This document shows positions 17,301-20,300 of a DNA stretch of 64,000 nucleotides, in pieces (within the stretch, counting starts at the first letter, position 1; each line of letters opens with the position of its first letter). The stretch spans positions 4,650,001-4,714,000 of the forward strand of contig NC_043025.1 in NCBI RefSeq assembly GCF_006345805.1, read 5' to 3'. Source of the stretch: Octopus sinensis. Its lineage: Eukaryota. The translations under genes were made by a program, and so were the position numbers. The notes beneath the pieces are model-generated. The model was given only the letters and a program-made list of their open reading frames with translations. It did no database searches and was not told the origin of the DNA.

Positions 17301-20300
17301 AGTTTCAGGGACGTAAACACACCAGTATCGGTTGTCAAGCGATGTTGGGGGGACAAACACAGACACACAAACACACACACACACATATATATAGGCACAG
17401 GAGTGGCTGTGTGGTCAGTAGCTTGCTTACGAACCACATGGTTCCGGGTTCAGTCCCACTGCATTGCACCTTGGGCAAGTGTCTTCTAATATAGCCTCGG
17501 ACCGACCAAAGCCTTGTGAGTGGATTTGGTAGACGGAAACTGAAAGAAGCCCATCGTATACATGTATATGTGTGTGTGTGTCATCATCATCATCATCATC
17601 ATCATTTAACGTCCGCTTTCCATGCTAGCATGGGTTGGACGGTTCAACTGGGGTCTGGGGAGCCCGAAAGCTGCACCAGTCCAGTCAGATCTGGCAGTGT
17701 TTCTACAGCTGGATGCCCTTCCTAACGCCAACCACTCCGAGAGTGTAGTGGTGATTTTATGTGCCACCGACACAGGTGCCAGACGAGGCTGACAAACGGC
17801 CACGCTCGGATGGTGTTTTTTATGTGCCAGCCACCGACACAGGTGCCACGAGGCTGGCAGACGGCCACGCTCGGATGGTGTTTTTTATGTGCCACCGACA
17901 CAGGTGCCAGACGAGGCTGGCAGACGGCCACGCTCGGATGGTGTTTTTTATGTGCCACCGACACAGGTGCCAGACGAGGCTGGCAGACGGCCACGCTCGG
18001 ATGGTGTTTTTATGTGCCACCGACAGGTGCCAGATGAGGCTGGCAAACGGCCACGATCGGATGGTGCTTGTTACGTGCCCACAGCACGGAGGCCAGTCGA
18101 TGCGGTACTGGCTACGGCCACGTTCGGATGGTTTTCTTATGTGCCACATGTCACCGGCACTGGTACCACAAAGATACAAATTCCATTGATGTTCATCTAT
18201 TTTGATTTGTTTTGATTTGATTTTCACTTGCCTCAGCAGGTCTTCACAAGTGTCACAAGAAGGAAGGTATGCACAGGTGGACTGACTACGTCCCAGGTAG
18301 GGGCCATGGGTTATGGCCTGACTAGTCTTGCCGGGTCTTCGATGGTGTTTTTATGTGCCACCACCGACACAGGTGCTAGATGAGGCTGGCGAACGGCCAC
18401 GATCGGATGGTGTTTGTCATGTGCCCACCGCACTGACTACGGCACTGATGGATTTCTTGTGTGCCACAGGCACTGGTACCACAAGATGTGTATATATATA
18501 TATATATATATATATATATATACACACACACACACATACACACACACACACACACACACACACACACACACACACACACACATACATATATATAGGCACA
18601 AGAGTGGCTATGTGGTAAGTAGCTTGCTTACGAACCACATGGTTCCGGGTTCAGTCCCACTGCATGGCACCTTGGACAAGTGTCTTCTAATATAGCCTCA
18701 GACCGACCAAAGCCTTGTGAGTGGATTTGGTAGACGGAAACTGAAAGAAGCCCATCATATATATGTATATGTGTGTGTATATATATATATATATATATAT
18801 ATATACACACACACACACACACACACATACATATATATAGGCACAAGAGTGGCTATGTGGTAGGTAGCTTGCTTACGAACCACATGGTTCCGGGTTCAGT
18901 CCCACTGCATGGCACCTTGGACAAGTGTCTTCTAATATAGCCTCGGACCGACCAAAGCCTTGTGAGTGGATTTGGTAGACGGAAACTGAAAGAAGCCCAT
19001 CGTATATATGTATATGTGTGTGTATATATATATATATATATATATACACACACACACATATATATATGTATATATATATATATGTATATGTATATATATA
19101 TATATATATGTATATATATATATATATATATATATATTATATAATATATATAGGCATAATTAAATCTCAGAATGAGATTGAAACAGTAATCGCTCGATAA
19201 TGTAAAGTATAGAAGCCATCTTATCATGGCTAACCACATTGGGGAGGGGGTGTTACTGTAGCTTATAGCCCCAAGAGATCTTCGTCTCTAGATGGCTCTA
19301 AACACAATATCTGTGTCCTTGAAGTATTTGCAAAGGGAGGCCATCCCTTCCTCGCAAGCCTGAGTGATACGCCCGTTGACGAGGGACAAACATCCCGAAA
19401 CTAGTTCGAGCGTATCACTCAGGCTTGCGAGGAAGGGATGGCCTCCCTTTGCAAATACTTCAAGGACACAGATATTGTGTTTAGAGCCAGCTAGAGACGA
19501 AGATCTCTTGGGGCTATAAAGCTACAGTAACAACCCCCTCCCCAATGTGGTTAGCCATGATAAGATGGCTTCTATACTTTACAAAATATATATATATACT
19601 ATCTCTTATACTTAGTGTTCCTATTTTTTTCCCCTCAGGTTTCACTATGTAAGGGCAGATAAAGTCATGAAGCTCCGATCTCTGCTAGACAAAGTTGGAA
19701 ACATGCCTGGCATGATGGATGAAGAAAAAGGTAACTCAACATGACCCTTACATTTTGTTTTGGGTCAAATATTCAATGTTAGTCTTTTATCTTTCACCGG
19801 TTTCAGACATTGGACTGCAGCCATTCTGGGATTTTTCTTCATTGTCCAGCCTGCAATGTCCCTTATTTTCCTTCCTTTTCAGTACCTCACCTCTACCCAA
19901 CTATTCCTCCTATATCTTTATGTCCCCTCCTGGCATTAATCCCGCTTATTTGTCTTTCTCTCTCTTCACACAGACCCAGAGGAACTTTTGAACTGCCTTT
20001 TTGGTCACGTCATGAAGGCAGACCCTCTACTGCAGTTAAGGTAAGAACTCACATTACAGTTCGCTACAGAGACAGTTTCGGCATCACTATACATCACTAC
20101 CAGTGGAGGCACAATGGCCCAGTGGTTAGGGCAGTGGACTCGCGGTCGTAGGATCGCGGTTTCGATTCCCAGACCGGACGTTGTGAGTATTTATTGAGCG
20201 AAAACACCTAAAAGCTCCACGAGGCTCCGGCAGGGATGGTGGTGATCCCTACTGTACTCTTTCACCACAACTTTCTTTCACTCTTACTTCCTGTTTCTGT

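Follow-up and report, generated by a model that had tools for sequence, protein, structure and literature searches.

A hammerhead ribozyme-like motif in the turn of a 175-bp fold-back within a CYLD intron of Octopus sinensis

The fold-back and its host intron

We examined a 64,000-nucleotide stretch of the Octopus sinensis genome (contig NC_043025.1, positions 4,650,001 to 4,714,000; hereafter the window, numbered from its first base) and identified, in an intron of a CYLD-like gene, a near-perfect fold-back whose turn reads as the core of a type I hammerhead ribozyme. A first-pass annotation, made from the letters alone, had placed a CYLD catalytic-domain exon beside the repeat. This was confirmed by tblastn, which involved 13 CYLD-like USP proteins (35-60% identical to a three-exon query, 54-60% for the best; one is named CYLD by its source) and placed the exons of this plus-strand gene at 15378-15656, 19631-19729, 19958-20083, 21316-21456 and 23227-23373. 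The fold-back sits inside an intron of approximately 3.98 kb that ends at the acceptor AG 19637-19638. The annotated distances also proved correct: 55 nt separate the last base of the fold-back (19583) from the end of the acceptor AG (19638), and 232 nt separate base 19406, in the turn, from the same point. A small CYLD exon (19958-20083, DPEEF...-like) that the first-pass annotation did not contain lies 230 nt downstream of the exon at 19639-19730.

The fold-back totals 383 bp, with a GC content of 47% and termini TG...CA. Its arms, 19201-19375 (175 nt) and 19407-19583 (177 nt), match in 173 of 177 alignment columns (97.7%), so that the 175-bp repeat is real as first described. Of the four columns that differ, two hold 1-nt indels (19251/19533 and 19263/19520) and two hold mismatches (A19292 versus 19490 and C19373 versus A19409). 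When folded as RNA, the region 19150-19640 formed a single hairpin of -361 kcal/mol (z = -40 against shuffles); the right arm alone had no unusual structure (z = -0.44). The only ATG frame in the arms ends after 18 codons, and ARAGORN found no tRNA-like promoter in or near the element. Among the microRNA precursor families of Rfam, mir-532, MIR861, mir-1299 and mir-661 reached 25-33 bits against thresholds of 70-89. We rejected a microRNA precursor identity, such subthreshold scores being generic matches to a long hairpin.

These data identify the fold-back as a genuine and evolutionarily young inverted duplication. The event is comparatively recent, as the arms differ by 2.3% (4 of 177 columns), whereas those inverted repeats in the window that we read as opposed copies of a short interspersed nuclear element (SINE) are 83-95% complementary. 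Both arm indels fall at short T runs, one of them right after a G run, which are typical sites of long-read error and could hint at an artefact, for instance the collapse of a palindromic chimeric read during assembly. We consider such an origin extremely improbable, given that the arms, at 175 nt, are short and internal to the contig, where they sit between a SINE and an intact exon, that the turn is a structured biological motif, and that the two substitutions argue for real divergence. The turn is also distinct from the PacBio SMRTbell adapter, the one adapter considered.

Table 1. Features of the fold-back and its surroundings, in window positions.
Feature	Positions	Strand	Remarks
(TA)n/(CA)n microsatellite	19004..19152		left of the insertion; continues SINE 18840-19003
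Unique 48-nt leader	19153..19200		separates the (TA)n tract from the left arm; 7-bp hairpin AATCTCA/TGAGATT
Left arm	19201..19375	+	last bases CGCCCG = 5' strand of helix I; complementary to 19407-19583
Core box UUGACGA (positions 3-9)	19376..19382	+	U replaces conserved C3; RF00163 consensus CUGAcGA
Helix II GGGA/UCCC, 4 bp, G10.1-C11.1, loop 2 CAAACA	19383..19396	+	hairpin in minimum-free-energy and centroid folds
G12 A13 A14, palindrome ACUAGU, U17	19397..19406	+	read from the sequence
Right arm	19407..19583	+	begins CGAGCG = 3' strand of helix I; A19409 mismatched to C19373
(AT)7 tract	19586..19599		directly right of the fold-back
CYLD USP-domain exon	19639..19730	+	acceptor AG 19637-19638

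Other repeats populate the window (Table 1 and below), which is very rich in microsatellites. A second near-perfect fold-back at 744-1184 has arms 744-904 and 1024-1184 (157 of 162 columns matched), a 119-nt spacer and no hammerhead. Its termini read TTAA / GGGCTAAAG...CTTTAGCCC / TTAA, and a one-sided leader of approximately 95 nt (648-743) precedes it. The element sits among short tandem repeats, and the 15-bp ATATGTCTATCTATA found on both of its sides is part of a 16-mer tandem repeat and need not be a target-site duplication. A tRNA-derived SINE with internal (TA/CA)n is present in many copies that are 83-95% alike and often opposed (among them 18840-19003, 4166-4742, 25847-27519, 36713-37069 and 43230-44833). 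It resembles, and may be, the abundant octopus SINE; a string search of the literature for the SINE returned no match. By eye, we also recognized minus-strand open reading frame fragments that resemble the C-terminal or reverse-transcriptase part of long interspersed nuclear elements at 13501-13833, 20622-21107, 28801-29658 and 5000-5236. Low-complexity or tandem tracts that give spurious reading frames of 100-680 amino acids occupy 7714-9784, 15641-16547, 39227-40414, 40726-43013 and 47932-48974; they include a purine/pyrimidine-skewed block at 8-10 kb and, at 39.2-40.4 kb, a tandem repeat of approximately 33 nt.

The hammerhead core in the turn

The 31-nt turn (19376-19406) reads TTGACGA GGGA CAAACA TCCC GAAA CTAG TT, and the type I hammerhead topology that the first-pass annotation had proposed for it, in sense orientation, held base for base. 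In hammerhead numbering, the core comprises U3 U4 G5 A6 C7 G8 A9, G12 A13 A14 and U17. Helix III consists of A15.1-U16.1 and C15.2-G16.2 closing a 2-nt UA loop, the whole being the palindrome ACUAGU. The predicted scissile bond is 19406/19407, where C19407 (1.1) pairs with G19375 (2.1). Helix I is formed by the arms, which are flush with the core, as the earlier description of helix I as their continuation had it; that description overlooked a C·A mismatch at the third base pair, and five of the first six pairs are formed. The turn has the three-way junction of the type I class, in which helix I is open and helices II and III are closed by loops. Helix III is too small to close alone, and the predicted fold retains helix II but not helix III. 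All conserved type I core positions carry the expected base except C3, which is U19376; position 17 (H) is U, which is permitted, the usual base being C. The two deviations from the consensus (C3 to U, C17 to U) are both C-to-T transitions, the kind of change that decay would produce.

To score the resemblance, we used a descriptor that accepted C3 or U3, a helix II of 3-8 bp, an inner helix III length of 0-12 nt, H17 and at least 5 of 6 helix I pairs. On both strands of the window, the turn was the sole full match and the only hammerhead motif counted, against an expectation of 0.007 matches per core variant per Markov-shuffled window. A candidate at 21726-21763 (+), CTGAAGA...GAAA with a possible helix II, was rejected, as its helix I has at most 4 of 6 pairs and its chance level is 0.11 per window. 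Because a fold-back provides helix I for free, the fair test of chance is how often the turn of a fold-back would itself be a flush core; in Monte Carlo sampling at the base composition of the window, a 31-nt turn was a flush C3 or U3 core, on either strand, with a frequency of approximately 1e-6. Further, a pattern built from the Rfam consensus (YTGANGAGNNNCAAAYANNNCGAAA) matched only the turn at 0 mismatches in the window, and 0.01 matches would be expected even with up to 2 mismatches.

The likeness extends to positions that catalysis does not require. The turn and the RF00163 consensus (aUccagCUGAcGAGUCCCAAAUAGGACGAAACG..CGUCcuggAu) have in common C at N7, the G10.1-C11.1 pair, a 4-bp helix II and C15.2/G16.2, and loop 2 (CAAACA) is identical to the consensus loop (CAAAUA) at 5 of 6 bases. 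Given the rarity of descriptor matches, the low frequency of such turns and the likeness to RF00163 at catalysis-free positions, we take the turn, from its sequence, to be derived from a real hammerhead and not to match one by chance. The same comparisons support hammerhead identity as ancestry and not as function.

Searches with Rfam models gave a different picture. The hammerhead models covered were RF00163, RF00008, RF02275-7 and RF03152 (HH9 and HH10 included). At gathering scores, no hammerhead family was reported anywhere in the window, and at E<=10 no hammerhead model matched queries of 601 nt and 59 nt around the turn. Thus, the covariance-model match that the first-pass annotation had looked to as a check did not materialize. 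A control showed how insensitive the search is. Among phage contigs containing CTGATGAG...CGAAAC, the descriptor found many perfect type I hammerheads, often in arrays; when 10 phage loci were searched with Rfam at gathering scores, 0 hammerheads were reported, and the control loci with descriptor-perfect type I hammerheads included L002, L004, L018, L025, L026, L043, L046 and L074. In E-value mode, a perfect phage example fell short of the Hammerhead_1 threshold of 34, with 22.7 bits. We gave the Rfam negative less weight because perfect phage hammerheads were also missed at gathering scores. Extrapolation of this E-value scale puts the turn at less than about 9 bits, unless a filter discarded it; U3, U17, a helix III one pair shorter than in the model and the mismatch in helix I can explain such an outcome. 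The phage hammerheads have a helix III of 5-11 bp, and a model built on them would penalize the 2-bp helix III of the turn. The Rfam negative fits a degraded motif and leaves the evidence from the sequence standing.

Several of the phage contigs carry arrays of 2-5 descriptor-perfect type I hammerheads each: L002 (21-1378), L074 (858-1655), L098 (2409-3875), L039 (970-2164) and L094 (1191-1511). Array members lie approximately 180-800 nt apart and have an identical helix I; in L002 and L074, Rfam reported none at gathering scores.

The missing Rfam match and the unconserved C3 could be read as signs of a chance resemblance, in which a miniature inverted-repeat transposable element (MITE) or a local palindromic duplication happens to carry a hammerhead-like loop. 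The window does hold a ribozyme-free fold-back, and a gigabase-sized genome would by extrapolation contain hundreds of U3-type descriptor matches by chance. We nevertheless regard coincidence as improbable: it has to accommodate a flush core in the turn of a fold-back, at approximately 1e-6, together with agreement with the RF00163 consensus in loop 2, N7, G10.1-C11.1 and C15.2-G16.2. The MITE version faces a further difficulty at the ends of the element. No direct repeat of 2-9 bp (TA and TTAA included) flanks the arms (...CTCGATAA / TGTAAAG...CTTTACA / AAATATAT), and we rejected a MITE or other cut-and-paste transposon for want of a fixed-length target-site duplication. Like MITEs and fold-back DNA transposons, the element is short, non-coding and made almost entirely of inverted arms; unlike them, it has no target-site duplication, ends in TG...CA, has no second copy that we could see and carries a ribozyme-derived loop.

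Expected activity and fate of the RNA

Several features of the turn bear on catalysis. In the mutational literature (Ruffner et al. 1990; Nelson and Uhlenbeck 2008), the C3U change reportedly slows cleavage by orders of magnitude, and GUU, the triplet at the predicted cleavage site, is reported to be a poorer site than GUC. The short helix III would need a second copy, and the window contains no dimer partner for it. Loop 2 has no loop 1 to interact with because helix I, the mismatch at its third pair aside, is a perfect duplex. From these sequence features (U3, GUU, a helix III in need of a second copy and no loop 1 for loop 2) we expect self-cleavage to be very weak or absent. In hammerheads, C3 pairs with G8; C3G or G8C alone destroys cleavage, which recovers in part when both changes are combined (PMC11167929). 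Natural variants with U3 are on record but rare (PMC7151607).

Whatever its catalytic state, the transcribed locus must fold into an intronic RNA duplex of 175 bp whose end is 55 nt short of the acceptor. The halves of any cut molecule would stay together, held by this duplex. ADAR and Dicer accept duplexes of this kind generically. Long inverted-repeat (hairpin RNA) loci are known that ADAR edits or that are diced into small RNAs; like them, the element would give a perfect duplex exceeding 170 bp within transcribed sequence, although its processing is a physical expectation only. Cephalopods have strong ADAR activity, and editing of the hairpin would be likely if the SINE is indeed the octopus SINE. 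The present role of the element is probably that of an intronic double-stranded RNA only.

Intronic hammerheads are known in amniotes (HH9 and HH10 in Rfam), and the first-pass annotation had considered a comparable function here, in which the long helix I stabilizes the core and cleavage or editing tunes the splicing of CYLD. The sense orientation of the motif 232 nt upstream of the acceptor, the plausibility of the 175-bp duplex as an ADAR substrate and the amniote precedent speak for such a switch. Like HH9 and HH10, the turn is a sense-strand hammerhead motif within the intron of a protein-coding gene. Those ribozymes are, however, conserved across species, with intact cores and efficient cleavage, whereas the core of the turn is mutated and matched neither HH9 nor HH10 nor any other hammerhead model. 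The features of the turn itself lend no support to the proposal: it has U3 and GUU, its helix III cannot close in a single molecule, and both a dimer partner and loop 1 are missing. Nor do the four differences between the arms suggest constraint, and an intronic location is ordinary for elements of this kind, approximately 43% of Xenopus retrozyme copies being intronic (bioRxiv 10.64898/2026.07.22.740005). A functional intronic switch is thus very improbable.

Origin of the ribozyme-capped hairpin

Canonical metazoan type I hammerheads have a helix I of 6 bp, a helix II of 4 bp and a helix III of 1-2 bp with a palindromic loop of 2-4 nt, and they are active as dimers (Cervera and de la Pena, PMC4209133). 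This description, together with the RF00163 likeness, supports the link that the first-pass annotation drew between the turn and metazoan hammerheads with a tiny palindromic helix III. Such hammerheads occur mostly in retrozymes that lack long terminal repeats (non-LTR retrozymes), which form tandem repeats of 150-450 bp, and of 350-390 bp in mussel (PMC7229834). Retrozymes have been proposed to derive from Penelope-like elements (PLEs), and solo monomers exist (bioRxiv 10.64898/2026.07.22.740005). PLE insertions are truncated at the 5' end and often accompanied by an inverted truncated copy, which produces inverted repeats; they can carry a one-sided tail of 30-40 bp and favour microsatellites, with (TA)n as the target in the Naiad clade (PMC8557442). 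Further, purified PLE protein acts on both strands of AT-rich target DNA, cutting and extending them (PMC11167929).

Judged by its sequence, the turn looks like the retrozyme type and not like the minimal hammerheads of PLEs, because the longer helix II (usually 6-8 bp) and the bulged base of the latter are both absent from it. It shares with RF00163 and the non-LTR retrozyme hammerheads the type I topology, a core identical at the conserved positions except C3, the 4-bp helix II, C at N7, G10.1-C11.1 and a 2-bp helix III whose palindromic mini-loop implies dimeric action. It differs from them in having U3 and U17, in scoring below the Rfam reporting limit and in a helix I that is a 175-bp duplex instead of approximately 6 bp with a loop 1. 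In length (383 bp), the fold-back falls among mollusc retrozyme repeats, and its GC content is, as in those, below 50%. Unlike a tandem retrozyme, the window has one motif and no array; since solo monomers are known, a retrozyme derivation is still possible. The architecture of the insertion resembles that of a PLE in its short inverted copies, the associated hammerhead, the one-sided extra segment, the adjoining (TA)n and the absence of a clear target-site duplication. It departs from a PLE in that no reverse transcriptase or GIY-YIG frame is nearby and in that the hammerhead is at the junction of the copies and not inside each of them.

The flanks are compatible with such an insertion. TA repeats lie on both sides of the unit 19153-19585, and the leader at 19153-19200 has no other copy in the window and shows no kinship with the arms or the right flank (169 of 500 shuffled sequences scored equally well), which rules out a snap-back that read through into the flank. 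The leader may be the one-sided tail of a PLE-type insertion or simply older intron sequence. The inverted arms, the one-sided leader and the two-sided (TA)n all agree with PLE insertion (PMC8557442), yet each has a trivial alternative explanation.

On balance, we favour, with modest confidence, the view that the fold-back is a decayed, inverted-duplicated fragment of an element of the retrozyme or PLE lineage that now serves only as intronic double-stranded RNA. A short piece of a hammerhead-bearing retroelement would have inserted beside the (TA)n tract in the CYLD intron and would have been duplicated in inverted orientation at or after insertion. The duplication may have arisen from two head-to-head, 5'-truncated cDNA copies, as PLE-type integration often yields, in which case the left copy would begin exactly at the ribozyme cleavage site. 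Alternatively, the native helix I of approximately 6 bp (CGCCCG/CGAGCG) may have snapped back and paired, and a polymerase may have copied one arm from the other. The snap-back model directly explains why the arms start flush with the core. The only arm difference near the turn falls within the 6-bp helix I, which fits this model, but the chance of one of the four differences doing so is approximately 13%. The single copy is compatible with both models.

A number of observations weigh against a decayed retroelement fragment. Its postulated retroelement origin leans on the hammerhead itself and on the architecture of the insertion. At 48 nt, the leader exceeds the published PLE tail of 30-40 nt and may be ordinary intron sequence, and TA repeats are so common in the window that the flanking (TA)n is weak evidence. 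In six-frame translation, the window contained neither a GIY-YIG motif nor the YxDD motif of a reverse transcriptase, and, unlike the Anolis element, the arms do not encode the start of a PLE reading frame. No second copy of the arms or turn was found in the window by exact, 3-mismatch or word-7 blastn searches. The silence of the hammerhead models at E<=10 belongs here too, and the natural U3 variants mean that the U3/G8 core may have some activity.

The single copy also bears on the broader idea of the first-pass annotation, in which fold-back priming at the ribozyme hairpin generates a class of ribozyme-capped elements. Priming of this kind is reasonable as a one-off event, but the existence of a class is left without evidence by the single copy and by scans that returned no match. 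Neither scans of viral contigs with the arm and the turn nor two metagenome scans found a copy, which is weak evidence, as these collections appear not to include this genome; the same limit applies to a search of the translated arm reading frame against a protein collection, which gave no match and in which the best CYLD identity was 60%. String searches of the literature for the turn and the arms gave no matches, and the literature searched contained no family of ribozyme-capped fold-backs. A shared 12-mer, GAGGGACAAACA, also occurs in other repeats; we dismissed it as a coincidence, as it has no hammerhead context there.

A propagating, multi-copy family of hammerhead-capped fold-backs, in which the ribozyme hairpin regularly templates or primes the inverted repeat, would account for arms that are flush with the core and whose first 6 bp match the canonical 6-bp helix I, as ribozyme-primed snap-back predicts. 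It would also accommodate a length within the 350-390 bp of mussel retrozyme repeats (PMC7229834) and the near-identity of the arms, which suggests recent activity. The core of this copy is, however, already mutated at C3, and the single copy in 64 kb and the empty database and literature searches point the same way. Further, fold-backs in this genome need no ribozyme, because the one at 744-1184 has none. We regard such a family as unlikely, if still worth entertaining. Similarly speculative, and doubtful at present, is the corresponding mechanism, in which reverse transcription or repair can use helix I as an inherent snap-back primer and so turn retrozyme or PLE RNAs, occasionally or regularly, into ribozyme-capped perfect hairpins, possibly as a multi-copy family.

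If the fold-back is a decayed retroelement fragment, it adds one more dead copy, in a CYLD intron, to the hammerhead-bearing retroelements that are widespread in invertebrates, and a retroelement origin would lead us to expect kin in the form of a PLE end or a tandem retrozyme with CUGACGAGGGACAAACAUCCCGAAACUAGUC-like motifs. The placement of a long element that forms double-stranded RNA at 55 nt from a splice acceptor is of modest interest in itself, and the position of a ribozyme motif at the very tip of a 175-bp hairpin hints at how inverted duplications start. Priming from helix I, if true, would give ribozyme-bearing retroelements a hitherto undescribed way of producing long intronic double-stranded RNA and thus substrates of ADAR and Dicer. 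Should many ribozyme-capped hairpins exist across the genome, ribozyme structure would be linked both to how inverted repeats arise and to where substrates for RNA editing and small RNAs come from.

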